Below the pieces are notes generated by a model. It saw only the letters and a list, made by a program, of their open reading frames with translations. It did no database searches and was not told the DNA's origin. From sequence record NC_070958.1: a DNA stretch of 64,000 nt. One strand, 5' to 3'. Numbering within the stretch: the first letter of the stretch is position 1; each line of letters starts with the position of its first letter. This document shows, in pieces, positions 10,854-52,004 of the stretch. The position numbers and the translations under genes were made by a program.

Positions 10854-10858
10854 TACAA

Positions 10859-10885
10859 GAGTTAGCAGGGTCGTCCTGCTAACTC
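10859..10885 (+). terminator. Intrinsic terminator
   Basis: GAGTTAGCAGG/CCTGCTAACTC stem followed by CTCTTT. Confidence 0.7.
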
Positions 10886-10909
10886 CTCTTTACTATATAA
10901 GGAAACGAT

Positions 10910-11611
10910 ATGAACGCCATTGTAATGAAAACTAACTCCTTGGACGGCAACAAAGTGGTTACTCTCCCGGCTATGTCCGACTACCTCACTATCGCCCGTC
11001 ATCTCTATCCCAACGCAGAGATGTTCAATCTGTACCACTGTGTGCATATCGAACTCAAAGAAGCACTCAACGCACTTTTTGACCTGGGGATGGCTTCAGT
11101 GATCATTAACGACCACTTCATCACCGCTACCATGGATGACCGCGGGGTGGTTCGTTGGTCAATTGACAACATCACCTACATAACCGGTGATCTCTTCCCC
11201 GAAGAAGATGATTACAAGAACCTGGAGAACAATGCGTCCCAGGCTTGGAGTCGAGTTTTCACAGCCTGGATGTGCGAAGAACATGCCGAAAAAGACTTCG
11301 TGGAGTTGATCTCTCATTTTGGTGGTATCAAGATGGAGAATTATGTTCCGGATGTCAACCTGAACACACTGTACAGTGAAGTACTCTTTGCAGTGATACG
11401 TTCCGAGAGGTCTGGTGTTACTGAGCTGTCTCTTCCTGTGCGACTCCACAATGCAGAAATCCTTGCAGAGTTGTCCAATATCGACAACACCGGGTTTGTC
11501 TTCAAGGTCTCTCATCCGATGATGGGGTTCCGGACAATTGTTAACATGGGTGGGATGTTCCCGTCCATCGAGAACATGAACGCTTACTGCAAAGCCACTG
11601 AAACCTTTTAA
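10910..11611 (+). CDS. Hypothetical protein
   Basis: 233-aa ORF with AAGGAAA RBS. Confidence 0.8.
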   Translation: MNAIVMKTNSLDGNKVVTLPAMSDYLTIARHLYPNAEMFNLYHCVHIELKEALNALFDLGMASVIINDHFITATMDDRGVVRWSIDNITYITGDLFPEEDDYKNLENNASQAWSRVFTAWMCEEHAEKDFVELISHFGGIKMENYVPDVNLNTLYSEVLFAVIRSERSGVTELSLPVRLHNAEILAELSNIDNTGFVFKVSHPMMGFRTIVNMGGMFPSIENMNAYCKATETF

Positions 11612-16813: not shown

Positions 16814-16840
16814 TTTTAGTCACGCTATAAATGTTTGGAT

Positions 16841-16858
16841 AGATATTATCATAGTGTC
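16841..16858 (+). promoter_or_regulatory. Putative phage promoter motif, copy 2
   Basis: AGATATTATC-atag-TGTC. Confidence 0.65.
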
Positions 16859-19399: not shown

Positions 19400-19439
19400 T
19401 TTATTCTTTCTTTTATTTTGTCCCCATAAAGTTTCAGAT

Positions 19440-19457
19440 AGATATTATCAGAGTGTA
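19440..19457 (+). promoter_or_regulatory. Putative phage promoter motif, copy 3
   Basis: AGATATTATC-agag-TGTA. Confidence 0.7.
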
Positions 19458-25927: not shown

Positions 25928-25959
25928 AACCCCTTACTCCCAAGAGGGAGTAAGGGGTT
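25928..25959. terminator. Bidirectional intrinsic terminator
   Basis: AACCCCTTACTCCC/GGGAGTAAGGGGTT 14-bp stem between convergent genes. Confidence 0.85.
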
Positions 25960-25969
25960 GTCACTAACT

Positions 25970-26323
25970 TTATTTCTTTCCTTTATAATGGCTTTCGCCA
26001 CCAACCCTAACAGCTACATACATGAGCTGGTAATAACGCCACGACAGTTTGAGTCGAACCTCCATGTTGTATTTAAACAACTTGTCCGCTTCTTCACGAC
26101 TCCACATCCCGGTTGCGTACATATAGTCATGTACTAGGGCTGCTGGGAGGTACGTGTGAAATGAGGGATAGAAGGATTGTAACGCTCTTCCTGTGCTAGC
26201 ACCATTACTCCTGAATCCCTTAGGGACTGTGCATTCTGGTGTGACATAGTCTTCTAATAAGACCATTGTACCGTTGGTATAGTCGAACTCTACCTTAGGT
26301 TTGGCAAATACGAACTCTGACAT
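25970..26323 (-). CDS. DUF1353 family protein
   Basis: VPKGFRSNGAS...AALVHDYMY...EADKLF motif set; GAGGT RBS. Confidence 0.8.
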   Translation of the reverse strand: MSEFVFAKPKVEFDYTNGTMVLLEDYVTPECTVPKGFRSNGASTGRALQSFYPSFHTYLPAALVHDYMYATGMWSREEADKLFKYNMEVRLKLSWRYYQLMYVAVRVGGESHYKGKK

Positions 26324-26358
26324 AATGACCTCTATTTAATGTGCAAATGATTTCAGAA

Positions 26359-26376
26359 GTATATTATCTTAGTGGA
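26359..26376 (+). promoter_or_regulatory. Putative phage promoter motif, copy 4 (variant)
   Basis: GTATATTATC-ttag-TGGA. Confidence 0.55.
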
Positions 26377-26407
26377 TAAACTAATTTAATTTTTGTGAGG
26401 ACTTATT

Positions 26408-27418
26408 ATGTTGCCCATTATTGTTGGTGGTATCGCTCTGGCTGCAATCTTCGGTGGTAAGAAAGCATATACCGGACACAGGAAGAATGGAAGTGCTGAG
26501 GAATTGTTCACACTATCAGAGACTTGCCGAGTAGAGAGCGAAGCGAGTATTAAGCGCTCATCTGAATCACTGGATGAACTCATTAACAACTACACGTTGT
26601 TCTGTTCTGAATTTGGGAAGGAGATTAATTCCTTTACTATATTGGCTAAAGAAGTAACCGGTGTTCCCGTCACTGAGCTTAACCTGAACATTAAGTATGA
26701 TGACCTGGTTATCGCAACCAACTACGGTGAAGTTGCTAAGAGCATCGCGACAACAATTTCAGGTGGTGTGCTCACTGGCGCACTGATGGGGTTCGGTGGT
26801 TGGGGGAGTATGTTGTCTCTAGGTGTCGCTAGTACAGGCACACCCATTTCCGCGTTAGCTGGCGCGTCGGCTACCAACGCAGCCCTGGCTGCATTTGGTG
26901 GTGGTAGTCTGGCTACTGGCGGGTTGGGTATTGCCGGCGGTGTGGCCAGTCTGTCCGGAATCACTGTTGTTCCCGCTCTGGCAGCAATGGGTTGGAAATA
27001 TGACCGTGACGCCACCGCTAAATTAGATAGTGCACTTAATGTGGCCGAGGCCGCTTTAGAATTGCGCGAGAATGCCAAGAAGCTCGATACGTTCGTTACC
27101 GAATTAGAAGAGTACATCGGTTTGGTAATGACCGCGTTAACCAGAACCCGCGAAATCTTTGGTGAATACCACGAAGCACTGCGTAATCTCGATATTCTTA
27201 TAAAAGAACGTCGGGTAAACGAAATCGTGGAAGACGAAGAAAAGCGCATCATTTCGAACGCAATGAATCTGGGTCAGATCGCAGCCAAGATCATGACCAC
27301 ACCTCTGCTGGTCACTGAAACTGTAGACAACGAGCTTGTCATCAAGAAGAATGATGACGACCTCCCTGAAATAAATTGTGATGGTTTCATGGCTATAATG
27401 GAGAGTGCTAATCCCTAA
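26408..27418 (+). CDS. Glycine-zipper hydrophobic-hairpin coiled-coil protein (bacterial-type family)
   Basis: N-terminal hydrophobic MLPIIVGGIALAAIFGG; central GVASTGTPISALAGASATNAALAAFGGGSLATGGLGIAGG glycine-rich segment flanked by amphipathic helices. Confidence 0.85.
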   Translation: MLPIIVGGIALAAIFGGKKAYTGHRKNGSAEELFTLSETCRVESEASIKRSSESLDELINNYTLFCSEFGKEINSFTILAKEVTGVPVTELNLNIKYDDLVIATNYGEVAKSIATTISGGVLTGALMGFGGWGSMLSLGVASTGTPISALAGASATNAALAAFGGGSLATGGLGIAGGVASLSGITVVPALAAMGWKYDRDATAKLDSALNVAEAALELRENAKKLDTFVTELEEYIGLVMTALTRTREIFGEYHEALRNLDILIKERRVNEIVEDEEKRIISNAMNLGQIAAKIMTTPLLVTETVDNELVIKKNDDDLPEINCDGFMAIMESANP

Positions 27419-27429
27419 TAGGAGTAAAT

Positions 27430-29004
27430 ATGCAAACTCAAACTTATGATTGGACTGGTGAGTTCAACAAAATGATGGTAAACAGTCTGATCACAACGTT
27501 TGGGTTAGACCCAATGTTGTTTGATGACAAACGAGGTGGTAACGTCACCACTCTCCACAATGTTCGTTCTGAAGGTCTTGTGGCTGGAGAGCATCATCGT
27601 GAACTGATAGCGAATAAGCCAGGGTATGACGCACACGCCGCTCATAACGTTAAGGAGTTCCTTGACGCTAAAGCCGAACTCAAGGTATTGCGTAAAAGCG
27701 GCGCAGAGATCCAGGATGCTTACTCGGATCAAATCCTTAACAATTCCAGAACTGACCTGGATCACATCGTCTCTGCTAAGGCGATTGATGCAGATCCGGC
27801 AAGAATCATTTCTGGATTGAACGTGGGTGAACTTGCCGCCATAGAGGAAAACCTCACTCCTACCTCTGCAAGTATTAACCGTTCCAAAGGTGCTGATTCC
27901 GCTGATGAGTTCGAGAAGCGTATTAAACGTGATCAGAAAGTCAGGGATAAGTTCAGAGCGAGTATCGCTGGGAGAACAGATCTATCCAAGGAAGAACAGC
28001 AAACCCTTAATCTTTACGATCAACAAGAGATGATCGATTTCGATAAGATGCGGGAGCTTGAAGCAAAGGCCAATAACGCTCGTCAACGTAAAGAGGACGA
28101 TGCTTATTATGCGAGTGTTGACTTTGCCAAGCACACAATCAAGGACGCCGGTATTAGCGGTGTAAAGAACGGGACCAAGTTGGTACTCGGCACTTTGTTC
28201 ACTGAACTCTGGTTTGAACTTAAAGCAGGTATCCCCGAGATCTATAAGAAACATTCCGGACATTTCGTTCTCGTTAACTTTATGTCTGATGTTCGTGATC
28301 TCCTGGATAAATGCTGGGAACGGATCATGGTTAAGATAGCTGAGGTTCCGGCGTTGTTTATGAACGGCTTGTTCTCTGGTGTAATTACCAGTGTAACAAC
28401 CACCGTAGTTAACAAGGCCACCACTACCGTTAAGCTCTTTGGTCGTTTCTTCAGAACGATCTTTGACGCCATTATCGCTAGTATCAAAATGATTGTCTTC
28501 CCGCCAGCAGGTATGAAGGCCAGCGAACGCGCACAAGGTGTTGTGAACATCCTGTCAGTAGCAATCGCTGGGTGCGTAGGGATCGCCGTTAATGGTGCTG
28601 TAAATGCCAGTTACACAGGTCCCTTCGCAGAAGAGGTTGGTCTCTTCCTGGGCATGCTGGCCACAGGTATTGTAACTATTACCTGTGGTTACTTCATTAA
28701 CCATTCACCAACAGTTCAGAAGTTCTGGAATTTCTTCAACCACTTCAAATCAACAGAGGTGCAAACTCTCGAACACACTAACATGCTTAATGAGAAGCTG
28801 AATAAGTTGTTCGAGGATGTCGCTGAAGTTGAAATGGGGTTGAATGCAGAAGAACTTTCACAGTTTGTTTCATCCTTGCGTGGAAGCAGCACCGAATCTG
28901 ATCGCACTCAAGTACTGAAAGTACAGATCGAGAAGATGGGTATTGACTCGCCATTCATCCCAGGAGATATCGAATCCATCGATTCCTGGTTAGCAACACT
29001 TTAA
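27430..29004 (+). CDS. HNH-like motif plus C-terminal membrane hairpin protein, partner of 26408..27418
   Basis: GGNVTTLHNVR, DLDHIVSAK...NLTPTSASINRSKG (DH...N...N pattern), coiled coil, then hydrophobic GVVNILSVAIAGCVGIAV...VGLFLGMLATGIVTITCGYFI. Confidence 0.8.
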   Translation: MQTQTYDWTGEFNKMMVNSLITTFGLDPMLFDDKRGGNVTTLHNVRSEGLVAGEHHRELIANKPGYDAHAAHNVKEFLDAKAELKVLRKSGAEIQDAYSDQILNNSRTDLDHIVSAKAIDADPARIISGLNVGELAAIEENLTPTSASINRSKGADSADEFEKRIKRDQKVRDKFRASIAGRTDLSKEEQQTLNLYDQQEMIDFDKMRELEAKANNARQRKEDDAYYASVDFAKHTIKDAGISGVKNGTKLVLGTLFTELWFELKAGIPEIYKKHSGHFVLVNFMSDVRDLLDKCWERIMVKIAEVPALFMNGLFSGVITSVTTTVVNKATTTVKLFGRFFRTIFDAIIASIKMIVFPPAGMKASERAQGVVNILSVAIAGCVGIAVNGAVNASYTGPFAEEVGLFLGMLATGIVTITCGYFINHSPTVQKFWNFFNHFKSTEVQTLEHTNMLNEKLNKLFEDVAEVEMGLNAEELSQFVSSLRGSSTESDRTQVLKVQIEKMGIDSPFIPGDIESIDSWLATL

Positions 29005-29023: not shown

Positions 29024-29482
29024 ATGAAAAAGATTATTATCGCTAGCGCTTTTGTATTTTGTTCATTTGCAGTTCAAGCCGCTGACGTAGCCGTGCTGGG
29101 TGGTGGAATGTCCTATCACTTCAAACATGAAGGTCAGAACCAGGTACATCCCAGCATCGGGGTACAGATCGATAACTTCTCCGTTCTGTACACCACCAAG
29201 AATTCCATTGAACTCCCGTCCCTCCAGGTAGCTTATGGCGACAACTTCTTTGAATCCAAAGTTGTTGACTTCGGATATCGGGTTGGCCTTGCCACTGGGT
29301 ATCGTAAGGGGCACAAGTACAGTAACGGTGAATACTACTACGATGGGCACGAGATCGGAAACACTGGACTTCTCCCTCTGGTGACCATCACCACCACCAT
29401 CCACACCCCAATCCCCAAACTTGACTTGGTCGCTGATACAGCACCTAACGTAGTAATGTTTGGTTTTAAATACAACCTGTAA
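29024..29482 (+). CDS. Exported small outer-membrane beta-barrel-like protein
   Basis: Signal peptide MKKIIIASAFVFCSFAVQA; alternating beta-strand pattern; C-terminal VVMFGFKYNL resembling a BAM beta-signal. Confidence 0.65.
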   Translation: MKKIIIASAFVFCSFAVQAADVAVLGGGMSYHFKHEGQNQVHPSIGVQIDNFSVLYTTKNSIELPSLQVAYGDNFFESKVVDFGYRVGLATGYRKGHKYSNGEYYYDGHEIGNTGLLPLVTITTTIHTPIPKLDLVADTAPNVVMFGFKYNL

Positions 29483-29492: not shown

Positions 29493-29723
29493 ATGTCTAT
29501 TCTGGAAATGATCGCACTGACTTGCAGCCTGTTTATCATCGCTGTGTCGTTCATCGCGATATACCATATCAACAGAATGAAGAACCTCTGCTACAACGAT
29601 TACGTTGTTCGTGGCGAGATCTGGAGGGTCAGACTGGTGGCTTGGTCCATCAATGCGTTCCTTCTGATCAGTGTTCTCAGACTGGTCATGTCGATCTGGA
29701 TCTATTTCAGCAAAATGTTCTAA
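29493..29723 (+). CDS. Small two-TM membrane protein
   Basis: AAGGAG RBS before ATG 29493; two hydrophobic segments. Confidence 0.65.
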   Translation: MSILEMIALTCSLFIIAVSFIAIYHINRMKNLCYNDYVVRGEIWRVRLVAWSINAFLLISVLRLVMSIWIYFSKMF

Positions 29724-29799: not shown

Positions 29800-30621
29800 A
29801 TGAAAACTCTGCCTAATGAATTCCTGAAAGTAAACCCGATCGCAAGCCAAGTCATCCCGCTCTACTTTGAAGATGCGTGGAACATGAACTCCCAGGGTTC
29901 TTGGAAGATCAATGGACGTCATGACGATGTCGGTTACGACGTCGAGATCGTTCACGCCTTGGGCTCTGTAATCGTCCGTGGGACGTTTGGGCACAATGTT
30001 GGTGTCATTACCATGCCCCGGAATAGCATGGCTAAAATGGCCATTGGAGAGAGCATGGTGCAGGCAGTTGGTAATCTTGACAACTCGCGTCTCTGTAGCG
30101 AAGCCAACCCCCAGTCCAAAGATAAGATCCTGGCTCTGTTCGATGCTGCGTTCTCCAGGGCCAAGCGCGAGGTCAACTACTTCAAAGCAAGTAATGCCGG
30201 CTACAAGGGTGCTGACCTGATGCGTCAAGCCGAGTTCATCGGCCTGGGTGCGATTCTGACCCGACTGATTGCGAACCGGAAGATCTCCATGGGTGACTTC
30301 GAAGTACTCACCATGAGTGGTTGGGAGATTGATTTCGATCGCATGACCGAGATCAACGAAGGCAAAGTTGGTCTCTTCGATGCCCCGGCTATCATCCTTC
30401 GTTCGACTGCAAAGGTGGATATCCACGTCACTCTCAAGGCGACAGGTACTATTATAGTCTCCTTGATAGAACAGGTTGAAGGTGAGGTCATTCACCGGAC
30501 AACTCTCCCCATGGGAGTATGTGACCAGATCACCGGCACTCATTCCTCGTTGAATGAGAACTGCACCAGCATGTTCGTAGAACTCTCCAAGTATATTTTA
30601 GGGGGTAAGAACAGGAGTTAA
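29800..30621 (+). CDS. Hypothetical protein
   Basis: 273-aa ORF with AAGGA RBS. Confidence 0.8.
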   Translation: MKTLPNEFLKVNPIASQVIPLYFEDAWNMNSQGSWKINGRHDDVGYDVEIVHALGSVIVRGTFGHNVGVITMPRNSMAKMAIGESMVQAVGNLDNSRLCSEANPQSKDKILALFDAAFSRAKREVNYFKASNAGYKGADLMRQAEFIGLGAILTRLIANRKISMGDFEVLTMSGWEIDFDRMTEINEGKVGLFDAPAIILRSTAKVDIHVTLKATGTIIVSLIEQVEGEVIHRTTLPMGVCDQITGTHSSLNENCTSMFVELSKYILGGKNRS

Positions 30622-30623
30622 CC

Positions 30624-30992
30624 GTGAAACCCATCAGGATCAATCCGAGAGCTCAAGCGATTAACGTGGACTACTTGCCCACGCCAAAGCAGTTGGAAGA
30701 ATGGCACGATGAAGATGCGGTCATTAATCATCTAGCCAAGAAAGTATTAACAAAGTGGTATCAAGTACCTGCCAATAAGGTAGAGAAAGATAAAGCATTG
30801 TTATTCCTTCCGCAGGGTAAGTTGTACGACACACTTATTCCGAAGATGGGAATCAACAAGAGGGATGCGTTTAACCATATGGTGATCGTCCATGGGATGA
30901 CAGAACCTGGTTCTCTGCAACTTCACTTGATGATGTACTTTCTTTGTAAGTGGTTCACCAAGAGTTCTCTAAGAACTTATTCTGAAGCCTAA
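30624..30992 (+). CDS. Hypothetical protein
   Basis: CAGGAG RBS with GTG start; followed by a terminator. Confidence 0.75.
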   Translation: MKPIRINPRAQAINVDYLPTPKQLEEWHDEDAVINHLAKKVLTKWYQVPANKVEKDKALLFLPQGKLYDTLIPKMGINKRDAFNHMVIVHGMTEPGSLQLHLMMYFLCKWFTKSSLRTYSEA

Positions 30993-30993: not shown

Positions 30994-31026
30994 AACTCTC
31001 TGTCACCCAATGGGTGACAGAGAGTT
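30994..31026. terminator. Intrinsic terminator
   Basis: AACTCTCTGTCACCC/GGGTGACAGAGAGTT 15-bp stem with T-rich flank. Confidence 0.85.
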
Positions 31027-31356: not shown

Positions 31357-34227
31357 ATGAAGAAGTCATGCATTGCCATTCTGGTTTGGGCCGCTGTATC
31401 GGTTGCACCTTTCAACGCTACAGCGGCGAATATGAACGTTGACCAAGAAGGAACTTGGAGTCCCAACTGGGTCGATAAAAACGAAGGTGGTTACAACAAC
31501 GGGACCCGCAACCCGTATTGTAAAGATAATGAAAACGCCGGAAGCTGGGGTGCTGATGGTTGCACTCAAAACCACAAGAACGATGAATACGTTCAGTGGG
31601 GCGAGATGCGTGGTGTAGTTGCTGACATTCAAACCCTCAACACCTGGACCACCTGGAACAACGAGCACGTCAAAGCAGCCGAGAAAGACATTGCGGTCAT
31701 CAATGGCAAGATCGAGAAATTCGAATACGTCGGAACCCAGATCGCCGGCAACATCGATGTCATCGTTGACAAGGGTACCAGTGTCGTCGAAGGTGCTAAG
31801 ACCAGCATCAACAACAGCATCGACGGTAAGATCGAAATCGCCAAGGGTGAAGTTAATACCCAGATCGACAACTCCATCACTAACATTGTGAACGGTGGCA
31901 ACACCGAAATCAATGCCAAGTGGGAAGGTGCCAAGGCCACCGCTAACGATTTCGACGAGCGGATCACCGCTAACAAGAATCGTATCGATGACCAAGCCGG
32001 TCGTATTGGTAAGGTTGAAGATCTCAGTGCACAGAACGCCAAAGATGTCAAAGCAGCTAACAAAGAACTTGTCCGTCTGGACAATGTCAAAGCTGACAAG
32101 ACTGACCTGGACGCTCTGGGTGGTCGTGTCGACGTAATCGAAGGTGACGTAGCCACCATCAATGGTAAGATCGAGAAGGTTGAAGGTAACAAAGACCTGA
32201 TCATCTCCAAGGCTGGCGATGCGTACACCAACGTACGTACCGACATCACCAACGAAATCAACAGCACTGTAACTGGTGCAATTGATGTTGCGATTGACAA
32301 TGCCAAAACCACTGTGAACAACAAGTGGGAAGAAAACAAAGGTGACATCGTTGCCAATGTTAACGGCAAAGTCGAGAACATCCAAAATGACATCACCAAC
32401 AACGTGATGAACCAAATTGGTGACATCGTAATTGATGGTAACAGCGAAACCGTTATCAACATCAAGAACGACATTACCAAGGATGTAACCAACCAACTCA
32501 AACTCGATGGCAAGGGCGTTGCTCTGAACATCAAGAAAGAGATCCAGGAAGGTAACAACGACATCTACAACAACATCTCCGGTAAGATCGAAGGTAAGTT
32601 CGATGATCAGTACGCTACCCTGGTAGCTATGGGTCAGGCTGAGTCCGATCGTCTGGAAGTTAAGAAGGCTGACAAAGCAGATCTCGATGCCGCTGTACAA
32701 GCTGGTAAAGATGAAGCTGCCAACATCAATGCTTCTATTGGTGCAATGGGTGACCGTGTAACCAATGTTGAAGGTGACGTGTCCAACATCAAGCAGGATG
32801 TAACCAACATCCAGGGTGATATCACCACTATCCAAGGTGACGTTGCTAACATCAACGGCAAAATCTCTTACGTCGAAAACAACAGCCAGGAAATCATCAA
32901 CAAGGCTGGTGCTGCTGTAGACGCCAAGATCGATGTTGCTTACGAAGGTGCCAAGACCGAAGTGACCAATCTGTACGACAACGCTCGTACCGAAATCACT
33001 AACGAAATTGACAACGCCGTAAACGTTGCTGTGGAAGGTGCTCGTACTGAAGTTAACAACAAGTACGAAACCATCAAGAACGAAGTCGTTAACGGTGATA
33101 ACAACACCTACAATTCCATCAAAGCTGACATCAGCAAAGATGTGAAGAACGAAATCGTCAACAACATCACTGAAGGTAACAATACCGTTGTAAACGAAAT
33201 CAAAGATGGTCTGGTTGAAGAAATCCGCGAAGAAGGTAAAACTGTCGTAGTGGATCTCCAAGACCAAATCGATGCGGCTAACGCACGTATCGATGTACAG
33301 ACCGGTCGTGGTGAGCAAGCTTGGGCTTCCTATCAAGAAGACCGTGCGTATGCCACCCAGCAGTATACCCAGGATCGTCAAGTTGCCGTAACCACTTACA
33401 ACAACGCCCGCGTTGAAGCTGAAAGTGCTTATGTTACTATGGATGATAAGAAAGCCGACAAGTCCGATCTGGATGTATTGAATGACAAAATCGATGGTGT
33501 CGCTGCCAACGGTAAGACCGACGAAGAAATCAAGGCTATCGCAGACCAAGCTGCTGCTGACGCTGTGAACAATGCCAAGAAAGAAGTCGTCGTGGCTGTT
33601 AAAGACAAAGCTCCCGCAGCTAACGAAGCTGTAACCGCTGCTAAGACCGAAGCTAAAAAGCAGGTACAAGCTAGTATCGATGCGTCTATCTCCAAAGCGA
33701 AAGCTGCCGCTAAAGACCAAGCTGGTCAGGCTGTTGCTGCTGCTAAAGAGAAAGCACGTGCCGAGCTGGCCGCTGCCATGCCTGAGCTGAAAGGTAAAGC
33801 AGAAGTTGTTCGTACCGAAGCTGTTGAAACCCGCAAGCGTGCTGACCTGGCCCTGAAAGCCACCCAGGACAACCACACTGCAATTCAACAAGAGCGTGCT
33901 GATCGTATCCAAGGTCAGCGTGAGACTCTGCAATCTGCCAACAACTACACTGATCAGAAAGTTGAACAACTGCGTGGTGAAGTCGAGCATAACCGTCGTA
34001 AAGCTGCCGCTGGTATCGCTGGCGTGGCTGCAATGACCAACATCCCGACTATCTCCCAAGGTAAGAACTTCGCGATTGGTGCTGGTATGGGTTACTACGA
34101 TGGCGAGCAATCCCTGGCTATCGGTTCCCAAGGTCGTTTCAACGAGAACCTCACTGGTAAAGCAACTATCTCCACCGACTTCCACGGCAACACTGTAATT
34201 GGTGCTGGCGTAGGTTTCGAGTGGTAA
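31357..34227 (+). CDS. Trimeric autotransporter adhesin (YadA-like)
   Basis: Sec signal MKKSCIAILVWAAVSVAPFNATA; long coiled-coil stalk with NGKI and KADKxDL repeats; ANNYTDQKV connector; C-terminal YadA anchor AAAGIAGVAAMTNIP...FAIGAGMGYYDGEQSLAIG...GAGVGFEW. Confidence 0.92.
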   Translation: MKKSCIAILVWAAVSVAPFNATAANMNVDQEGTWSPNWVDKNEGGYNNGTRNPYCKDNENAGSWGADGCTQNHKNDEYVQWGEMRGVVADIQTLNTWTTWNNEHVKAAEKDIAVINGKIEKFEYVGTQIAGNIDVIVDKGTSVVEGAKTSINNSIDGKIEIAKGEVNTQIDNSITNIVNGGNTEINAKWEGAKATANDFDERITANKNRIDDQAGRIGKVEDLSAQNAKDVKAANKELVRLDNVKADKTDLDALGGRVDVIEGDVATINGKIEKVEGNKDLIISKAGDAYTNVRTDITNEINSTVTGAIDVAIDNAKTTVNNKWEENKGDIVANVNGKVENIQNDITNNVMNQIGDIVIDGNSETVINIKNDITKDVTNQLKLDGKGVALNIKKEIQEGNNDIYNNISGKIEGKFDDQYATLVAMGQAESDRLEVKKADKADLDAAVQAGKDEAANINASIGAMGDRVTNVEGDVSNIKQDVTNIQGDITTIQGDVANINGKISYVENNSQEIINKAGAAVDAKIDVAYEGAKTEVTNLYDNARTEITNEIDNAVNVAVEGARTEVNNKYETIKNEVVNGDNNTYNSIKADISKDVKNEIVNNITEGNNTVVNEIKDGLVEEIREEGKTVVVDLQDQIDAANARIDVQTGRGEQAWASYQEDRAYATQQYTQDRQVAVTTYNNARVEAESAYVTMDDKKADKSDLDVLNDKIDGVAANGKTDEEIKAIADQAAADAVNNAKKEVVVAVKDKAPAANEAVTAAKTEAKKQVQASIDASISKAKAAAKDQAGQAVAAAKEKARAELAAAMPELKGKAEVVRTEAVETRKRADLALKATQDNHTAIQQERADRIQGQRETLQSANNYTDQKVEQLRGEVEHNRRKAAAGIAGVAAMTNIPTISQGKNFAIGAGMGYYDGEQSLAIGSQGRFNENLTGKATISTDFHGNTVIGAGVGFEW

Positions 34228-37601: not shown

Positions 37602-40600
37602 TTACTTGTTGTGGATACCACCACCGAACGCACGGTTATCCAGTGCACGGTTCACAACAGCATCCAAGGTTTCGTTGTTCGGGTACTTGTAAGTACCGGT
37701 CAACTGGAAGTCCGAAGGTGTTGCATTCGGACCCGCACCAGGGAATGTCGCTGTCAAGATACCGGTTGCAGGATCGTAAGTTTCGTTGGCTACGCCAGCG
37801 CCATCGGTACGACCTGGGGTGTACACGCGAGTAACTGTCGGACCCAACTTAACAGACGGACTGAACGAACCATCGGCTTCTTTACACATCATGGAGAAGT
37901 TGACATTACCACCACCCCAAGAGATGTCATACAACTCAACGTTACGCGCACCCTTCACAGGGATGGACGTTGCTGAGAAGCTGATAGTGAACGGAACGTA
38001 CACTTCTGCGTTCTCCGCATTACCGTCTACCTTGATCCAGCCATTACCGTTGTAGTTGGTACCGGCGGCGTCAGGAGCTGCAACAGCGTAGGTTGTTACA
38101 TACGCACTCTCGTTGTTCAGGTGTTCACAAACGTAACGATTAGTGCCAGGAATGAGACCCGTCATGTTACCGAATACGTAAGTGGCTTGTCTCGGCATGA
38201 CCGAGTTAGCACCCGGAACCAGGTTGTGAGACATTTTCAGGTTGTTACCAATCCAGGTGTAGCCTGTGGTGTTTGCACTGTAGTACCAAGCGCGACGAGA
38301 ACCAGAAATCTGGGTCTTGGCCGCCGCTTCGGTTGTTACCATTGCAGTACAACCAACGAGCATGCTCAGGTCAACAGGAATCGGTTCGATGTCGAACTGA
38401 ACTGTGAGAACACCAGTTGCTGGGTCATAAGCACTGCTCTTCACATCCAGGGAACCACCCTTAGAACCTTGTGCTGAATCCAGCTTGGTCACGGTAGCTT
38501 CAGTCGGAAGATCGTTAGTGTTATTCTTCAGCGTGTACTTCATTGTGGCCACGTTATCCTTGACGGAAACAGAATCCAGCGTTGAGACGTACGGTCCTTT
38601 AGGAAGAACATTGGTGTAATCCAGAACCCAAGGAAGTCTTACCTCCAGGTTATCCGGTTGTTTGAGCGACAGGTATCCATTACCAGTGTAATGGGTGTCC
38701 TGTGTTGTACTCGGAGCAGCTACGTTGTAGTCGATGATCCAAGATACTTCACCCTTGTTGTGGATGGTACCAACCGCACCTGTTGTCGCAGACGGATTAA
38801 CTGCCAGTGCCACGAACGCGCCGTCACCTTGGAAGTTGTAACCACCGTTAAGCGTCACATAGTAGTCACGCTGTAAGCGACCATTTTTCCATTCGATGCC
38901 GATGTCACGCATTTCGAAGACGTTCTGTACGAAGTCGACTTTGTACTTAGCGATCTGTCCATCATTGGTAGTGATTTCCATATCCGCTTCGAACTTATCG
39001 GCCCAAGAACCAGTGAGGATCTTGGTCTTCGCAGACCAGCTCAGGGTGCCAGTCGCAGGATCGTAGGACTGTGTGAGTTGGTTAGAGACGTTATCGAGGA
39101 AACCCTTCACCGGAGTGAACTTGGTAATCCGAGCACTAGTTGGGATTGTCCCGGTCAGATCCATTTTCAGTTTCTGGGAGAACAAATCAACTTGGTGGTA
39201 CTGACTAACAGGACCTGCGGAAGGAACAATCGGTTCACTATAGTCCACAGTGAACGGGATGATTACCTTAACCTTGTTACCCTTGTCGACGCTGTAGTTA
39301 CCAGTCCCCGTGGTCTTGTACGGACGGATGTCAGTACGACGTGGGAGATTCAGTTTCCACACCTTGTCACCGGCAGTGTGATCCAGCAAGCTAGCAGTGC
39401 CAGCATTGTTGGTGTATTCAACACCATTCAGTACGAGGTTGTCGATAGCCACGGTGCCCGCTGTTACTTCATGGTCAAGGACCAGAGCGTTAGCACCCAG
39501 CGTTGCGTTCACACTCTTAACGAGATGTTCCACATGCTGGTAGGTCACGTGAGGCTTGAAGGTACTACCATCTTCGTTACCGGAATCAATGGTGCCCTCG
39601 AGGATAACTTCAACTGGTGTTGCGCCACTAGGAGCGTCACAGTCATAAGTCACCACAAAGAGACCGGTTGTCTTGTCATAGACAGGAGGTTTGGTCGAAG
39701 AGATGGTCGCGCCAGTTGCCACAGGTTCACCGACAAACTTAACATCAGGCGGGAATGCACCATCGTTATTGGCAAACTTGTAGGTCTCTACCAGTTCATT
39801 GTTAGTGATAACAGTGCTGACCTTGGTAGGAGTGTAAATAACCGGAGCAGGAGGTACCACAGCCTTGGTAACTTCCATCTTACTATCCAACGCCGGTTTG
39901 GTGATGTTATCGCCATAAGCCGGGAAGTTCACACGACTGTTGAAGGTCGCCTGACCACCGTTCTTAGCGAACGCATCAGTCATCTCGAACACAAATGTCA
40001 AGATGCCAGTTACTGGATCGTAGCTTTCACTCTTAGGTGTCTTGGTTCCGTTCAGGGTATTCAGAACGTAGTCGAACGGCTTATTGGTATAAGCTGTGCC
40101 TTTCGGAACCCCGCCTTGGGCAAAAGCGTTGTTAACTGTCACTGTCAACAGGTTGCCTTCCAGCTCCATGTCTTTCAGCCAGGTGTTAACGTAACCGTTG
40201 TTAGTCAAGAACTGCTTGAAGGTACAAGTCCACGGGAGTGCGTAGAACAGCTTACCACCTGCGTTGGCCATGAACTTACCGCTGACCTTGTAGACAGTAA
40301 CGTCATCAGTCTTCGGAGGAGTTGTTGGGACATAGCACAGATAGAAGATGTTCGGGGTAGCACTACCGGTCTTCTCGGTACGGATGGGTCCGGTTGATTC
40401 AGGATCAGCCGAAGTCACCACGTGGTAACCTTCAGTGATGTCTACATCACCAGCATTGCGCTTCACCTTGTGGGTGACACGGAACGCCTTTTCGTAGTCC
40501 TGCCATCCAGCGTTGGTCTGGGTGACACTATGGACATACAGGGTGTGAGTGAGAGGAGCGGTCAGCTCTTTGACACCAGCCTTGAACACCGGGTTGATCA

Positions 40601-43600
40601 CAACAGGGAGTGCGGCCGTACCGGTCGGTTTGGTAATCCCAACCTTGAAGCTGAAACGACCAGTTTGGTCATCATAAACTTCTTCAGTTGCTACACCGTC
40701 GATGTTGGAAGGAGAAGAGAACGCCTTAACCATCATCTCTGTCGGAATGCTGCCGTCACCATTGGTGATGTCATAGACAATCGCCATAGTTGCGTCGTCA
40801 ACAGTACTGGAGACGTGAGTAGCGATCAGAATCCGATCCGGGTTAACAATAGCCTCGAACAGTGTGTCCTTACCAATGCCACCGTCGTCGGCCCAGATAT
40901 CGGTTACGAACTTGATCTTCTCGCCATCCAGCAACGGGTTCATCTCGAATACAAACGAACCTTCACCAGTTGCAGGATCGTACTTGTACAGCTCACCGTC
41001 GACACTCAACGGAGTGCGGTTCCCGCCAACAGTTTTCTCGGCTGAACTGAACGGTGTTTTCAGGCGGAGATTGAACGGATAGGCATCACCTTCCGGAGTG
41101 ACCTTGAAGGAGACGGTCAACTGGTTAGTATCCACGTCATACTTCCCACCAAGGGTGGTGGTGGTAAAGGTCTTCGGTTTAGGCAAGATGTAACTGCCGC
41201 GAGTCACAGTCGGTGTGATGAACCCACACAGGGACTTCAGCTTGATTGTCCCGATAGCCGAAACGGAGGTTTGTGCAGTCGCATTACCGTAATAGTGAAC
41301 CACCACAGTAATTACACCAGTCGCAGGATCGTAGCTTTGGGCCTGGATTTTCCCGTTATCGGCAGTGTTGGACCCACTAATGGCTCCTGTAAAATATCCA
41401 TCCAACGGGATCTTGCCGTCTTTGGTCCTGACATCAACCAACCAACTCACCGCCATGACCGGTCGAGTTCCAACAGGGACATTTACTTGTTTGTACTCGG
41501 GGTCGTTCCGGAATATAGCTGTGCCTTCATTCACATCTGAGAGCACGTGGTAATCAGAACGAGAAGCTGTTACCGTCATATTCTCGAACGGGTAATTGAA
41601 CTCCAGAGTCCAATCCCAGCGGTTTCTCGGGTCCTCGTGCATCGGAACAGCGACGGTACCGACCCAGACGTTACGATCTTCACCTTCTGTGGCTTTACGT
41701 TTCCAGACAAGCTCAGCTTCGAAGCCAGGATGGTTCCCGCCATTACTAATCTTGAAGTTGGTCAGCTTGGCGGCCACATCTACAGAACTAACGCCCTTGG
41801 TATCGCGGAACGAATACTCAAACTTGAGTTCTTGGTTGCAATAGGACTTGTTCAGCAGATAGATGGTCAACGGCTCCACCGTCTCGGTCACACGGAACGG
41901 GACTTCGGTATCTTCAACCAGTACGATCCCCTCGTAGTCGTACCGTACCGGAACAGTGGTCACTTCCTTAGCTGTTACGCTATAAGTGATGGTCATGGTC
42001 CCGGCATTGTAATTCTGGGAAACCGGGTTAACCCCTTCCAGGCCAGTCCCACCATTGATGGGTTGAACCACAACAGTTGTCGGTGCAGGAGAGCCATCGT
42101 TAGCCACGACTTTACCGGAGTGAGTGATCAACTTGGTGGTCATCACCGGCTTTTCCCAGACAATGGAGTACGCGCTCTTAGCTGTCGTTTCCACAGTGTA
42201 GGACTCAGAGGCGTTCGGGTATTCGTCGGCGTAGACACGACCTTCAACCAGGTAGTTGGTACCCTCACCACTCGGATTCTCCAGAGCGATATCAGCGTAC
42301 ACAGTTCCTGTATTGACGTCGTAACGACGATTGGTCAATTCCTTGGTACCGTTCTTGGTATTCACCGCACGGGTAACCGGAGTCACCAGTGTAGCACCTT
42401 CAGGGATGGTGTCGTCGGACAGACGAACTTGCATACTGACAGTACCGATGGTCCCGTTAACAGTCAGTTTGGCCTCAGTCACCTTGATCGGGGTACGAAT
42501 AACTTTGACGACCACGTCATCGATGAACTGAAGTTCCGGCTTACCAACATACGGAGTCAGAATTACTGACCCAACGAATGCGTACGTCATATCCTTGGAA
42601 GGATCGAGTGTCACAGTCGCTTCGAACTTGGCGAGACCAGTCACGGGATCGTAACTCGTGTCTTCCTTGGTGATCGGAGTCGCAACGTTGGTTGCAGTAG
42701 CAAACGGAATCTTGAAGTCAGCGGCTACTGGGTAGGACCCGTCTGCAAGCCGAACCTTGTAAATGCCGATTGCTTTATCACCGACAACTTCCAGAGACTG
42801 GAGAGTGATACTAGGATCGGTGTTTCCAGTGCCATCGTCCGGGAGAGTCCAGGAATCAGGTTTCACTGTACCAGTTGTTTCGGCTACAGCGTAGCTGGTA
42901 CCAGAAGGAACAGTTGCACTTACGGTGAGCGCATACTTCTCGATGGTGTCGTTCGGTGCAATGATGTCCGCACTAACTTCCCACAAGCCCTTGCTCTTAT
43001 CAATCTCCTTGAAGGAGAACTTGGGATCAGCAGCGATGTTCTCACCAGAAACATAGGCAAGTGTGGCGTCGCCGGTGTAGGCGGCATCACCAAGGTACAG
43101 CCCTACCTTCCTGACGATACGGAGACCATTGAGTGTGGTTTCAACATCGGTTGCAGTGAGGTCGAGTACCAGGTCCTTGACGGATACGGTGAACAAGGAA
43201 CCATCTGCTTCGATACGAGCGTTGTAGGTGATCGGTTCGATCACACCTGTCTTCAACACGAGGTCGAAGTACAAGACACCGGTACCCGGGTGGTAATCCT
43301 GGTTAGGCGTTCCCTGATCAGGTGCGATACCAGAGATGGAACTGGCGTCGTAGAACTTGGCATCGCCGGGATGTACGTTGGGGGAGCCGATACGATTGAT
43401 CCGAACGGTATGACGGATCTTGTCACCCATCAACTTGACACCCAGGTCGGTAGCTTCCCATTCCACCTCGCCGCTATTGGTGTACGTTCCGGTGAAATCA
43501 CCAAACAGAGGCTTCTTGAAGTCGTCTGCTTTGAACTCACCCTTGGCGGAGTAAACGTTATCGCCCAGATCGGGGTAAACGATATCCACTGTCAGCGTCC

Positions 43601-45986
43601 AGAAGTCACCGGCCTTTTCCAGAGTGTGAGTACCATTGGGTTTGAGACCGACTGTATTGGTCAGACCCAACAGAGTCAGATCTTTAACCTTGGAACCATC
43701 ATCACTGTAGGTTGCGTCCAAAGTCCAGCGAAGTTTGGGATCGGCTCTGTCCAGGAGGAACTCGGTGTTCGTGGTGGTGAAGTTGATTTCGAGATCGTTA
43801 TCGAATACAGCTTCGAATTTGGCGGTTGCTGTTTTCACAGTTCCGTCGCGTTCGTGAGTGCCGTGGACAACCCATTCGAAGTCGACAGTAAGTTCTACCG
43901 GATCATTTCCATAAGCAGTCAGTTCTGCGGAAACGGTACCGGATTGGAGATCGACGTCCCAACCTGGTTGAGAGAAACTTTCAGGTACGAGACCTTTGAT
44001 GTTTTCCATGCCTTTGGGGTCGATAGCCGGAATGTCTTTACCATCAGACAGTACAGCGTTATACGGCCACGTTACTTTGGTCGGTGCGCGAGGGGAATCG
44101 AACACTCCCTTGCCTGGTGTGATGACAGCACTGACCACAGTCACCCAAGTACCATCACCGTTGGTGGTTCCAAACGGAGTGGACGGGGTGCTACAGACTA
44201 CGCTGAGTTTTACGGAGATCTTGATCGGCTCAATGTCCGGATCAGGAATGATAACGATTGTCACGAAACCATTTTCGATAACCGCTGCGTCACGCATTGT
44301 CCCACCAACGATGGCCGGGAATACGTTTGCGATCATCGGATCGTTCGGGCTTTCAGAGTTGTCTACCTTAACACGATAAGTGACCAACTGGGTCTTTTCA
44401 TCGTAGGTGAGAGTCTGTTGGGTGAACGTGATGACCGGATCACCGGTGGTATCGAACTCCTTGGAGAACTTCATGGAGTAGGGAATCATCTCCTCCAGGT
44501 CGTCGATCTTCGCTTCACAGAAAAGTTCGATCTCGTACTTCTCAGGCGTTTGCGGAATCACGGTTATGTCGTGATAGACCTCACCGTTTTCGGTGATGAC
44601 ACCAGGTCCCGCATTGTTGTTGTCTTCCAAACCAACAGTCCCCGGAAGGAACTTATTGGAGCGTTGTGTGAAGTAAGGAACGATCCCACCCACATAACGG
44701 AAACGACCAACCATGTTCAGTACTGGACCGAATGCGGGTTCATCATAGACAAACTCGATCTCCGGGCGCACTTCCTTAGGGATGGAAACTTCGGTTTCTG
44801 CTTTGCGGAGACCGATATCCCACTTATGGGTTTGAGCACCCATCGTCTCAGTTTTCAGAGTGAACGTGTAAACATCACCATCGACTGATTTGACTTCTGC
44901 TGTTTCAGACTTCAGCTTGTCGGACAGACCAGTGACATATTCACCAGTATAGGTGTCTTTCACTTTGGCCGTCAAGGTGTACGCATCAACAACTGCCACT
45001 TGTTCGATGACCAAGCGATCCACGTCGACGCCACCAGTGAACTCAGCGCTCTTGGTCACTGACTTAGAACCTTCAGTGTCTTTCCGAGTGAAGTCCACTT
45101 TAACGGTCAAAGTACCGAGGAACTGATCGTTGACCTCTTCGTCACCGGTGTACGGTTCGAATTCACTGTAAACAGTAGCGACTGTTTTGTGTTCAGTCAC
45201 AGAGAGTTCGTTGGAAAGTTCCAGACGGAAACCAGCAGGTACTTTGTAGTCACTAGCGATGCTAACTACCGGTGACATGGTTTCGATACCCTGCCAGTGT
45301 GCTACCAGTTCGATATCGAACTTGGCTACGACACCAGTCTTGTTTTCCATGCCAGTTGCACGACTAGGGTTGATCTTGACGACCATACCGTCGCCGCCAT
45401 CCAGGTTCTCGTCATAAACGAAAACTGCTACCGGGGTGGGTTCCAGGAGTGACCGATCATTGACCATCATGGTGTAGTCAGCACTGAGTGGATGGGCGTC
45501 CTCGGCGGAAACATCCAGGCGATCAAAGAAGATGTTGGAAGTGGCTTCACGGAGACCACCTTCACCTTTCAGAGTCTTGAGGAAGAGACAATACTGTCCG
45601 GTCGGTTCATAAAACACGTACTCGAAATCCCAGTTGTTACTGCGGAAGAGTGCGTGAAGTTCACCGATAGTTTTAACGGTTTTGACGTTAGTCTCCATAC
45701 CAGTCAGGATTTCACCGAAGGGCAAACGCTCTACAGGGATATCCACCCGACCGAAACCGGTAATGCGTGAAGTGATACAAACCAAAGACTCACGATCCCC
45801 CTGGATGGGTTCGATACGCACATCTTCGGCTTTAAGGTTATTGTAGCGCTCTCTCGCTACTTCGAGTTCGCCCTTGGGATCATCGATTTCGAGATCAGCA
45901 AGGCGCTTTGCGAGGAACCGTTGTACAGAGACCCAGAATGGATCACGTACAAAGGCACTCCTTTCAACAATCAACCCGTTTTCCAT
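37602..45986 (-). CDS. Giant (2794 aa) putative tail fibre / receptor-binding protein with Ig-like repeats
   Basis: Shared N-terminal domain; about a dozen Y(D/H)xxTG motifs in T/V/P-rich beta-sandwich-like repeats. Confidence 0.85.
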   Translation of the reverse strand: MENGLIVERSAFVRDPFWVSVQRFLAKRLADLEIDDPKGELEVARERYNNLKAEDVRIEPIQGDRESLVCITSRITGFGRVDIPVERLPFGEILTGMETNVKTVKTIGELHALFRSNNWDFEYVFYEPTGQYCLFLKTLKGEGGLREATSNIFFDRLDVSAEDAHPLSADYTMMVNDRSLLEPTPVAVFVYDENLDGGDGMVVKINPSRATGMENKTGVVAKFDIELVAHWQGIETMSPVVSIASDYKVPAGFRLELSNELSVTEHKTVATVYSEFEPYTGDEEVNDQFLGTLTVKVDFTRKDTEGSKSVTKSAEFTGGVDVDRLVIEQVAVVDAYTLTAKVKDTYTGEYVTGLSDKLKSETAEVKSVDGDVYTFTLKTETMGAQTHKWDIGLRKAETEVSIPKEVRPEIEFVYDEPAFGPVLNMVGRFRYVGGIVPYFTQRSNKFLPGTVGLEDNNNAGPGVITENGEVYHDITVIPQTPEKYEIELFCEAKIDDLEEMIPYSMKFSKEFDTTGDPVITFTQQTLTYDEKTQLVTYRVKVDNSESPNDPMIANVFPAIVGGTMRDAAVIENGFVTIVIIPDPDIEPIKISVKLSVVCSTPSTPFGTTNGDGTWVTVVSAVITPGKGVFDSPRAPTKVTWPYNAVLSDGKDIPAIDPKGMENIKGLVPESFSQPGWDVDLQSGTVSAELTAYGNDPVELTVDFEWVVHGTHERDGTVKTATAKFEAVFDNDLEINFTTTNTEFLLDRADPKLRWTLDATYSDDGSKVKDLTLLGLTNTVGLKPNGTHTLEKAGDFWTLTVDIVYPDLGDNVYSAKGEFKADDFKKPLFGDFTGTYTNSGEVEWEATDLGVKLMGDKIRHTVRINRIGSPNVHPGDAKFYDASSISGIAPDQGTPNQDYHPGTGVLYFDLVLKTGVIEPITYNARIEADGSLFTVSVKDLVLDLTATDVETTLNGLRIVRKVGLYLGDAAYTGDATLAYVSGENIAADPKFSFKEIDKSKGLWEVSADIIAPNDTIEKYALTVSATVPSGTSYAVAETTGTVKPDSWTLPDDGTGNTDPSITLQSLEVVGDKAIGIYKVRLADGSYPVAADFKIPFATATNVATPITKEDTSYDPVTGLAKFEATVTLDPSKDMTYAFVGSVILTPYVGKPELQFIDDVVVKVIRTPIKVTEAKLTVNGTIGTVSMQVRLSDDTIPEGATLVTPVTRAVNTKNGTKELTNRRYDVNTGTVYADIALENPSGEGTNYLVEGRVYADEYPNASESYTVETTAKSAYSIVWEKPVMTTKLITHSGKVVANDGSPAPTTVVVQPINGGTGLEGVNPVSQNYNAGTMTITYSVTAKEVTTVPVRYDYEGIVLVEDTEVPFRVTETVEPLTIYLLNKSYCNQELKFEYSFRDTKGVSSVDVAAKLTNFKISNGGNHPGFEAELVWKRKATEGEDRNVWVGTVAVPMHEDPRNRWDWTLEFNYPFENMTVTASRSDYHVLSDVNEGTAIFRNDPEYKQVNVPVGTRPVMAVSWLVDVRTKDGKIPLDGYFTGAISGSNTADNGKIQAQSYDPATGVITVVVHYYGNATAQTSVSAIGTIKLKSLCGFITPTVTRGSYILPKPKTFTTTTLGGKYDVDTNQLTVSFKVTPEGDAYPFNLRLKTPFSSAEKTVGGNRTPLSVDGELYKYDPATGEGSFVFEMNPLLDGEKIKFVTDIWADDGGIGKDTLFEAIVNPDRILIATHVSSTVDDATMAIVYDITNGDGSIPTEMMVKAFSSPSNIDGVATEEVYDDQTGRFSFKVGITKPTGTAALPVVINPVFKAGVKELTAPLTHTLYVHSVTQTNAGWQDYEKAFRVTHKVKRNAGDVDITEGYHVVTSADPESTGPIRTEKTGSATPNIFYLCYVPTTPPKTDDVTVYKVSGKFMANAGGKLFYALPWTCTFKQFLTNNGYVNTWLKDMELEGNLLTVTVNNAFAQGGVPKGTAYTNKPFDYVLNTLNGTKTPKSESYDPVTGILTFVFEMTDAFAKNGGQATFNSRVNFPAYGDNITKPALDSKMEVTKAVVPPAPVIYTPTKVSTVITNNELVETYKFANNDGAFPPDVKFVGEPVATGATISSTKPPVYDKTTGLFVVTYDCDAPSGATPVEVILEGTIDSGNEDGSTFKPHVTYQHVEHLVKSVNATLGANALVLDHEVTAGTVAIDNLVLNGVEYTNNAGTASLLDHTAGDKVWKLNLPRRTDIRPYKTTGTGNYSVDKGNKVKVIIPFTVDYSEPIVPSAGPVSQYHQVDLFSQKLKMDLTGTIPTSARITKFTPVKGFLDNVSNQLTQSYDPATGTLSWSAKTKILTGSWADKFEADMEITTNDGQIAKYKVDFVQNVFEMRDIGIEWKNGRLQRDYYVTLNGGYNFQGDGAFVALAVNPSATTGAVGTIHNKGEVSWIIDYNVAAPSTTQDTHYTGNGYLSLKQPDNLEVRLPWVLDYTNVLPKGPYVSTLDSVSVKDNVATMKYTLKNNTNDLPTEATVTKLDSAQGSKGGSLDVKSSAYDPATGVLTVQFDIEPIPVDLSMLVGCTAMVTTEAAAKTQISGSRRAWYYSANTTGYTWIGNNLKMSHNLVPGANSVMPRQATYVFGNMTGLIPGTNRYVCEHLNNESAYVTTYAVAAPDAAGTNYNGNGWIKVDGNAENAEVYVPFTISFSATSIPVKGARNVELYDISWGGGNVNFSMMCKEADGSFSPSVKLGPTVTRVYTPGRTDGAGVANETYDPATGILTATFPGAGPNATPSDFQLTGTYKYPNNETLDAVVNRALDNRAFGGGIHNK

Positions 45987-51963: not shown

Positions 51964-52004
51964 TTTATTATCTCTTATTTTCTTTTGTCTAAAACAACTC
52001 AGAT

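Follow-up and report, generated by a model that had tools for sequence, protein, structure and literature searches.

Reduced phage-borne form of a candidate bacterial defence system in Aeromonas jumbo phage D6

Why does a phage carry two genes for membrane proteins whose relatives sit side by side in bacterial chromosomes, and what might it use them for? The question arises in a 64,000-nucleotide stretch of sequence record NC_070958.1, 'the window' in what follows, that is 100% identical to Aeromonas phage D6, a Ludhianavirus and jumbo phage of Aeromonas hydrophila with a genome of 259,831 bp. Window positions are those of the record minus 124,000. The two genes, both labelled hypothetical in the record, are:

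26408-27418, plus strand: gene 1 (gp118), 336 amino acids
27430-29004, plus strand: gene 2 (gp117), 524 amino acids

What the phage carries is a reduced form of a candidate defence system that is still uncharacterised. In bacteria, homologues of the two genes stand in the same order and are followed by a third gene, for a small cysteine-rich protein, that the phage lacks. As to purpose, the explanation that we favour, tentatively and with slightly less than even confidence, is that the two proteins make up an inner-membrane nuclease complex, reduced from a bacterial conflict system and used by the phage for superinfection exclusion. The bacterial system itself is most probably anti-phage. A first-pass annotation, made from the letters alone, had taken the DNA for that of a jumbo phage, had recognized two co-oriented genes 11 bp apart—the spacer carries an AGGAG Shine-Dalgarno sequence—and had guessed at a captured bacterial membrane-plus-nuclease module used in conflict. 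The first two statements are correct and the third is right in outline; it went astray in assigning gene 1 to the ClyA-type toxins, and in taking an incomplete operon for a whole one.

The two proteins

The gene 1 protein begins with a hydrophobic helix (residues 1-20) and, after it, a basic patch. Two helical hairpins, the first of them long, then flank a Gly/Ala 'glycine-zipper' region free of charges, and a small element closes the C-terminus. The helices at residues 19-84, 97-119, 202-268 and 276-297 are modelled at a predicted local distance difference test (pLDDT) score of ~75-90. The zipper, residues 112-196 (85 amino acids; 26741-26995, plus strand), has no D, E, K or R at all, is 23% Gly and 19% Ala, and is poorly modelled. 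Long regions of this kind are typical of oligomeric membrane-inserting effectors. Positions that are invariant in the family cluster within it, at residues 141-189, around the core A141 S142 T143 G144 T145 ... G164 G165 G166 ... G171 G172 G174. The hydrophobic peptide quoted in the first-pass annotation corresponds to residues 141-178, and the N-terminal helix is a further hydrophobic element besides. By hydropathy both proteins are membrane-inserting, as had been proposed.

Gene 2 falls into three parts:

27430-27939, plus strand: N-terminal domain, about residues 1-170, with the motif GG.V.T..N (36-44) and D111 H112 ... N141 ... N150 ..K153
28345-28701, plus strand: membrane region, residues 306-424, with four hydrophobic segments (306-328, 340-362, 367-395 and 399-424)
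28702-29001, plus strand: C-terminal helical domain of ~100 amino acids, which together with the membrane region is the part common to partners of the PDC-M09B type (see below)

The motif DHIVS is present as had been noticed, at residues 111-115; the single C-terminal two-helix hairpin described with it gives way to the four segments and the helical domain that follows them. The protein lacks a signal peptide and its predicted membrane segments are even in number, so that its nuclease-like head and its C-terminal domain should both be cytoplasmic.

Is the head a nuclease? The His-Me (HNH-like) arrangement that had been suggested for it is borne out by the motifs, not by the statistics of the matches. 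Eight residues are invariant in 52 diverse representatives of the family (G36, G37, T41, H112, N141, N150, G313 and N328), and for D111 and K153 conservation is 90% or more. In the model, residues ~40-230 score pLDDT 72-88; strands occupy 108-112 and 142-146, and a long helix begins at 158. D111-H112 lie in the first of these strands, which is where a His-Me finger would place its acidic residue and its His, at the end of strand 1; and N141, N150 and K153 align with the NL...N..K of BrxU, as the Asn and Lys of such a finger should. BrxU (7p9k_A residues 470-533, the DUF1524 His-Me finger) is also the best PDB sequence match of a broader gene 2 family profile, A3, and DH, NL and N..K are all matched there, motif for motif, at an expectation value (E) of 0.074. 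Three other family profiles (A1, A2 and A4) returned coiled-coil or chance matches only. Pfam GmrSD_C appears below threshold in 6 of 52 and 3 of 23 gene 2 members (best 9.6e-4, below gathering), and HNH_4 (0.086) and the PHROG endonuclease VII (0.0068) are weak matches of the same sort. The head is a putative metal-dependent nuclease of the DUF1524 type.

Pfam, NCBIfam and PHROGs gave nothing significant for either protein, and Foldseek against the PDB gave no match at E<=0.001 for either model, with nothing below E 2.8 for gene 2. Against BFVD, the only significant match of the gene 1 model is its orthologue in a sister phage. One proposal that these searches bear upon is that of the first-pass annotation, in which gene 1 is an alpha-pore-forming subunit of the ClyA/Hbl/Nhe/YaxAB kind that forms, with an HNH nuclease, a wholly undescribed two-component system. 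The helical hairpins on either side of a hydrophobic tip suit this idea; AhlB, ClyA, SmhB and MakA are among the top Foldseek matches, none of them significant; and there is a weak match to NheC (E 0.0059). We nevertheless consider it improbable. The Foldseek values for AhlB, ClyA and SmhB are E 0.14-0.5 at template modelling (TM) scores of 0.17-0.21, a weak negative given a model of medium quality; the NCBIfam NheC match amounts to 15.9 bits against a cut-off of 420; no Pfam family matches, and no secretion signal is present. The helices of BDLP and of Tc pores score equally in Foldseek, and the likeness to ClyA is thus one that long helical hairpins have in general. Nor is the system wholly undescribed, since both families are already candidates in PADLOC (PDC-M09A and PDC-M40B), albeit unvalidated ones; and while two components is a fair description of the phage pair, the bacterial form has three genes plus a WYL regulator.

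The bacterial operon and its phage copy

Both proteins belong to large bacterial families. Gene 1 has 368 word-index matches, usually named 'chemotaxis protein'. Gene 2, usually named 'cobalamin adenosyltransferase', has relatives in 625 clusters (50% identity) at E<=1e-30, and in 2,666 at E<=1e-3, when counted by exhaustive search of representatives; a word-indexed search, even with an alignment, recovers 11-12. Both names are unsupported. Among the loci of the 80 best genome matches to the gene 1 alignment, a gene 2 homologue lies directly downstream of gene 1 in 26, and these are all 26 members of a proteobacterial clade whose gene 1 protein is ~366 amino acids long. The same order recurs in Escherichia coli, in Pseudomonas mosselii and in one metagenome contig, where gene 2 is 30% identical to that of the phage over its full length (E 5e-95, 2e-80). 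In E. coli the pair is chromosomal in 383 of 5,426 complete genomes (~7%). It occupies integrase islands linked to tRNA genes, where type ISP restriction, cytosine methyltransferases or McrBC are its neighbours, and it often stands behind a WYL/WCX regulator; of the 26 loci, 16 have such a regulator nearby. The first-pass annotation had placed such genes side by side in bacterial accessory DNA under uninformative names. Gene-neighbourhood and PADLOC searches agree: the homologues are co-localized, restriction and integrase genes surround them, and they match PADLOC candidates.

What is new here is a third gene of the bacterial operon, and its absence from the phage. In all 26 of the HNH-type loci, and in the E. 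coli locus L003 besides, a small gene abuts or overlaps the stop codon of gene 2; its product is ~90-105 amino acids long, has eight conserved cysteines and belongs to Pfam CxxCxxCC (PF03692). A hidden Markov model of this family finds no match in the six-frame translation of the window, and tblastn finds none in phage records at E<=1. The genes downstream of the phage pair, gp113-gp116, were considered as functional stand-ins for the CxxCxxCC protein and rejected: they have 1-3 Cys each and do not match it. Nor does a WYL regulator precede the phage pair; upstream are a divergent DUF1353 gene (gp119) and a motif of the phage's own. In L003 the third gene (10716-11000 of that locus) overlaps the stop of gene 2 by 4 bp and was left uncalled by gene callers. 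Locus L004 has identical gene coordinates and likewise no third-gene call, and the gene is probably at the same position there, too. Public annotation probably under-counts the CxxCxxCC gene for this reason.

The wider gene 1 family is modular. A clade of ~335-residue gene 1 proteins pairs with proteins of the PDC-M09B type, which have only the membrane and C-terminal half in common with gene 2 (hhalign probability 94.7%, gene 2 residues 225-524); the HNH-like domain is a swappable N-terminal head. A CxxCxxCC protein is encoded in 29 of 54 of these non-HNH loci, and TerB-domain proteins and other small partners are often encoded in them, too. Relatives of gene 2 are found, in turn, behind a 295-residue PDC-M09A protein, or behind a different Gly-zipper/TerB-like protein. 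It follows that gene 1 is the constant element and gene 2 one of several partners. The TerB-domain proteins are encoded by ~130-codon genes upstream in L021, L070 and other loci, and in L094 (5324-5974) the partner of a gene 2 relative is itself a Gly-rich hydrophobic N-terminal segment joined to a TerB-like domain, which hints at a link with Ter-type membrane stress systems. In four loci (L030, L031, L047 and L053) gene 1 is either present as two paralogues or divided between two open reading frames; L030 has an M09B-type gene in addition to a complete gene 1/gene 2/CxxCxxCC operon.

In phages the pair is as rare as it is well kept. Each of the four Ludhianavirus phages (D6, D3, D9 and LAh10) has genes 1 and 2 in intact form. 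Pairwise ratios of non-synonymous to synonymous substitution rates (dN/dS) lie at 0.05-0.13 in gene 1 and at 0.03-0.13 in gene 2, and purifying selection acts along the whole length of both. A tblastn search of 50,697 phage records at E<=1e-3 found no relative of either gene beyond these four, and 2.9 million IMG/VR contigs yielded three weak matches to gene 1 and no more. The related Aeromonas jumbo phages AerS_266 and ZPAH34 have a distant homologue of gp114, one of the genes downstream, and lack the pair. Identity to the closest bacterial relatives is 32-36%, and in a rough neighbour-joining tree the phage gene 2 forms a long branch beside, and outside, the whole proteobacterial clade; either the acquisition is old or the genes evolve fast. 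That the pair is functional in the phage is indicated by its integrity in four phages, by dN/dS of 0.03-0.13, by its own copy of the motif and by two more genes for envelope proteins directly downstream.

This distribution speaks to two further readings. One is that the proteins are structural, ejection or lysis proteins—membrane-inserting and tape-measure-like, for example—with no role in conflict. A PHROG tape-measure family matches the Gly-rich region weakly (E 0.12), and tape-measure proteins occur among the non-significant BFVD matches. We rejected a tape-measure or other structural role, and think the chance of it very slight: the bacterial homologues are found in non-prophage islands behind WYL regulators; relatives are confined to four of the 50,697 phage records and the three weak viral-contig matches; and the related jumbo phages do without the pair. 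The other is that the phage copies are anti-defence decoys, which mimic the gene 1 and gene 2 proteins of the host and poison its three-gene system by forming mixed, inactive complexes. A copy without the third gene and the regulator, and so divergent that it is at most 36% identical to any bacterial relative and branches outside the proteobacterial clade, could be explained in this way. Against it, all of the invariant catalytic-type residues are retained in the phage, both genes are under purifying selection over their full length, and not one Aeromonas locus is among the 80 best genome matches. We rate this reading as decidedly improbable.

How, then, might the superinfection-exclusion complex that we favour have arisen, and how might it work? 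In Proteobacteria the corresponding system has three genes in a row, for the glycine-zipper protein, the HNH-like protein with its membrane anchor and the small CxxCxxCC protein, and in most cases a WYL regulator ahead of them. The two proteins retained by the phage would lodge in the inner membrane of the host as a complex, and their large helical and nuclease domains would face the cytoplasm. The His-Me domain of gene 2, held at the membrane, might then cut DNA as it enters via the envelope, while the replicating genome of the resident phage, in the interior of the cell, would be beyond its reach. Superinfecting rivals would be excluded, which is the use that suggests itself for such a module in a lytic phage. 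Use against rival phages is suggested by what was kept and what was dropped—two intact genes on the one hand, the third gene and the regulator on the other—and the CxxCxxCC protein and the WYL regulator, both lost, may be regulatory or sensing parts that a phage can dispense with.

Several observations weigh against this explanation. Every bacterial HNH-type operon has the CxxCxxCC gene and the phage does not; in the phage, then, the two proteins may function in another way or escape regulation. Loss of that gene and of the WYL regulator would equally allow an unregulated role directed at the host. The protein that remains constant from operon to operon is the glycine-zipper protein, not the nuclease, and this is what one would expect of a membrane-damaging effector no less than of a scaffold. 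The HNH assignment depends on sub-threshold matches (E 0.074 in the PDB, 9.6e-4 in Pfam, no significant Foldseek match), and the models of both proteins are middling (mean pLDDT 63), and poor where the membrane segments lie. And we found no experimental work on any member of either family in the literature that was searched; a search for PDC-M40 returned nothing, for PDC-M09 one passing mention, and for a connection between CxxCxxCC proteins and phages nothing.

The first three of these points can be turned into an alternative: that the pair is a host-directed weapon, or an abortive module let off its leash. With neither the CxxCxxCC protein nor the WYL repressor to restrain it, the pair would be constitutively active; gene 1 would permeabilize or depolarize the inner membrane and the nuclease would degrade host DNA, for host shut-off or for killing timed to suit the phage. 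The constancy of gene 1 among operon variants whose partners vary, the 85-residue charge-free region typical of oligomeric membrane-inserting effectors, and the loss of both regulator and third gene could all be read in this way. A nuclease tethered to the membrane is poorly placed to degrade the nucleoid, however, and a lytic phage needs an energized cell until late in infection. About half of the other-type bacterial gene 1 operons also lack the CxxCxxCC gene, moreover, so its loss need not mean deregulation. On balance we think host killing unlikely.

If exclusion at the membrane is the correct explanation, an operon that ~7% of complete E. coli genomes carry, and that recurs in many other lineages, turns into a concrete defence candidate that can be interpreted mechanistically; and the phage copy, which has neither the CxxCxxCC gene nor the WYL regulator, is a natural deletion series from which genes 1 and 2 emerge as the working core. 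A bolder version can be put forward, possible in our view and rather doubtful. The operon would be a new class of bacterial immunity in which the glycine-zipper protein and a His-Me nuclease embedded in the membrane stand guard where DNA enters the cell, and in which the Cys-rich subunit regulates or senses; the phage would have taken the two-protein core, freed it of regulatory subunit and WYL repressor, placed it on a promoter of its own and made of it a weapon for superinfection exclusion. The phage pair would then be a natural 'minimal system' that reveals which proteins are the effector.

Transcription unit, motif and other parts of the window

The motif ahead of gene 1 is one of a set. 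The 24-nt sequence TTYMRGATAGATATTATCNNRRTG, with a core GATAGATATTATC followed by nnRRTG, matches the window seven times when up to 3 mismatches are allowed, always on the plus strand and always between genes, and not once in 100 shuffles. The pattern matches are:

5759-5782, plus strand: motif copy
16833-16856, plus strand: motif copy
19432-19455, plus strand: motif copy, at gp133
26351-26374, plus strand: motif copy, ahead of gene 1
51272-51295, plus strand: motif copy
51997-52020, plus strand: motif copy, at gp102
62318-62341, plus strand: motif copy

Flanking sequence was read for every copy except that at 51272, and in these six a start codon follows ~30-50 nt downstream. The copy ahead of gene 1 ends 34 nt upstream of its ATG and is the most divergent of the seven (3 mismatches); it is conserved in phages D3, D9 and LAh10. 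The first-pass annotation had called the motif a phage promoter; that it is a repeated element is clear, and it may well act as a promoter, here for gene 1. The seven copies are likely to represent one promoter class of the phage. Two annotated starts, those of gp133 (GTG 19453) and gp102 (ATG 52018), fall inside the conserved 3' end of the motif; further downstream by 36 and 39 nt, at 19489 and 52057 respectively, each has another ATG in frame, preceded by a good Shine-Dalgarno sequence. The annotated starts are thus probably too far upstream.

Around the pair are these features:

25928-25959, bidirectional: strong G+C-rich hairpin with a 14-bp stem, which separates the upstream plus-strand gene array from the divergent gp119
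25970-26323, minus strand: gp119, a lone minus-strand gene between this hairpin and the gene 1 motif
29024-29482, plus strand: gp116, 152 amino acids, 19 bp after gene 2 and co-oriented with it
29493-29723, plus strand: gp115, 76 amino acids, two hydrophobic segments
29800-30992, plus strand: gp114 (273 amino acids) and gp113 (122 amino acids), soluble proteins, function not assigned
30994-31026, plus strand: terminator-like hairpin with a 15-bp stem

The first hairpin is the upstream boundary of the gene 1/gene 2 transcription unit and the last is its downstream boundary; together they bracket a unit of six genes: gene 1, gene 2, gp116, gp115, gp114 and gp113. The gp116 protein has a signal peptide, a beta-rich body and a C-terminal end rich in aromatics, and for these reasons looks like a small outer-membrane protein. 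The RefSeq label 'PagP' was rejected for it, as Pfam gives no support. The gene is probably co-transcribed with genes 1 and 2, and has no counterpart in the bacterial system. With gp116 so constructed, and with two hydrophobic segments in gp115, each of the first four genes of the unit encodes an envelope protein. In the record, gp119 is labelled 'tail assembly chaperone', yet it is a DUF1353 protein (Pfam 6e-16).

Further along, a 956-codon 'YadA-like' open reading frame (31357-34227) is shadowed on the opposite strand by another of 939 codons, and AT skew reaches an extreme (0.25) at 32001-34000, within the same stretch; this suggests strongly biased or repetitive coding sequence. The giant hypothetical gene gp109 (37602-45986, minus strand) is 8,385 nt long and encodes ~2,790 amino acids. 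Two more minus-strand genes flank it, each of ~1,000 codons, in what is the most G+C-rich part of the window (0.50-0.52).

Comparison with known systems

The closest described systems are the PADLOC candidates PDC-M09 and PDC-M40. Gene 1 matches PDC-M09A (PDLC04407 at 2e-15, PDLC04406 at 5e-11) and gene 2 matches PDC-M40B (PDLC04630 at 6.3e-31, residues 14-422 against profile positions 22-432 of 547), and their bacterial relatives match the same models. PDC-M09 calls for an adjacent subunit B, whereas the phage gene 2 matches PDC-M40B only; and PDC-M40A has no match in gene 1, in gp116 or in the bacterial operon genes that were scanned, a scan that left the WYL regulators aside. The phage pair is therefore a mixed combination, M09A-type with M40B-type, without the CxxCxxCC gene and the WYL regulator. 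PADLOC's phage-defence candidates were proposed by their embedding in known defence systems ('guilt by embedding'), and most remain unvalidated.

In the type IV restriction enzymes GmrSD and BrxU (DUF1524/GmrSD_C), the residues D-H, N-L and N..K come in the same order as in gene 2, at similar spacing, and in BrxU the motif in question, DHIYP, is required for defence. Gene 2 differs in that it has no DUF262, is anchored in the membrane and is paired with a glycine-zipper protein; the match to these enzymes is not significant.

For the logic of a nuclease confined to the membrane there is experimental precedent in SNIPE, a membrane-bound GIY-YIG nuclease that cuts phage DNA during injection; its membrane anchor keeps the nuclease off host DNA, and removal of the anchor makes it toxic (bioRxiv 10.1101/2025.11.03.685801). 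The likeness is one of functional analogy, in that a nuclease domain is anchored at the inner membrane. SNIPE does this with one polypeptide, which has a lone transmembrane helix and the domains DUF4041 and GIY-YIG; the phage module takes two proteins, gene 2 with the HNH-like domain and four hydrophobic segments, and gene 1 as the glycine-zipper partner. Pfam finds neither DUF4041 nor GIY-YIG in gene 1 or gene 2, and no homology is evident from the published domain description of SNIPE, with which, and not with a SNIPE sequence or model, the comparison was made. If the explanation that we favour is right, the bacterial operon would be a second, independent solution to the same problem, the discrimination of self from non-self by location, with a different nuclease fold and a dedicated membrane partner.

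Two likenesses concern gene 1 and the membrane. The LeoBC proteins of Eleos give weak, recurrent PADLOC matches to gene 1 relatives (3e-3 to 6e-9), confined to the helical/hydrophobic part; the aligned positions shift from member to member, and composition may drive part of the signal. LeoBC and the stalk and paddle of BDLP resemble gene 1 in that a helical hairpin carries a hydrophobic, membrane-inserting tip, and BDLP is among the non-significant Foldseek matches. A dynamin-like protein was considered and rejected, as neither gene 1 nor gene 2 matches a P-loop or GTPase family. With the toxins ClyA, Hbl, Nhe and AhlB, gene 1 has in common an elongated helical bundle and a hydrophobic hairpin; it is not secreted, and its hydrophobic part is a Gly/Ala zipper of ~85 residues in place of the toxins' short tongue.

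Phages are known to carry modules for superinfection exclusion and defence, among them Imm and Sp of T4 and the defence hotspots of prophages and satellites. The D6 pair resembles modules of the Imm/Sp type in that phage-carried envelope proteins are concerned, the simplest explanation for which is action on rival phages. There is no homology between them, and the D6 pair derives, instead, from a multi-gene candidate system of bacteria and is carried by a lytic jumbo phage. If we are right about its use, it offers a clear case of a strictly lytic jumbo phage that has turned an immune module of the host's own kind on its competitors.

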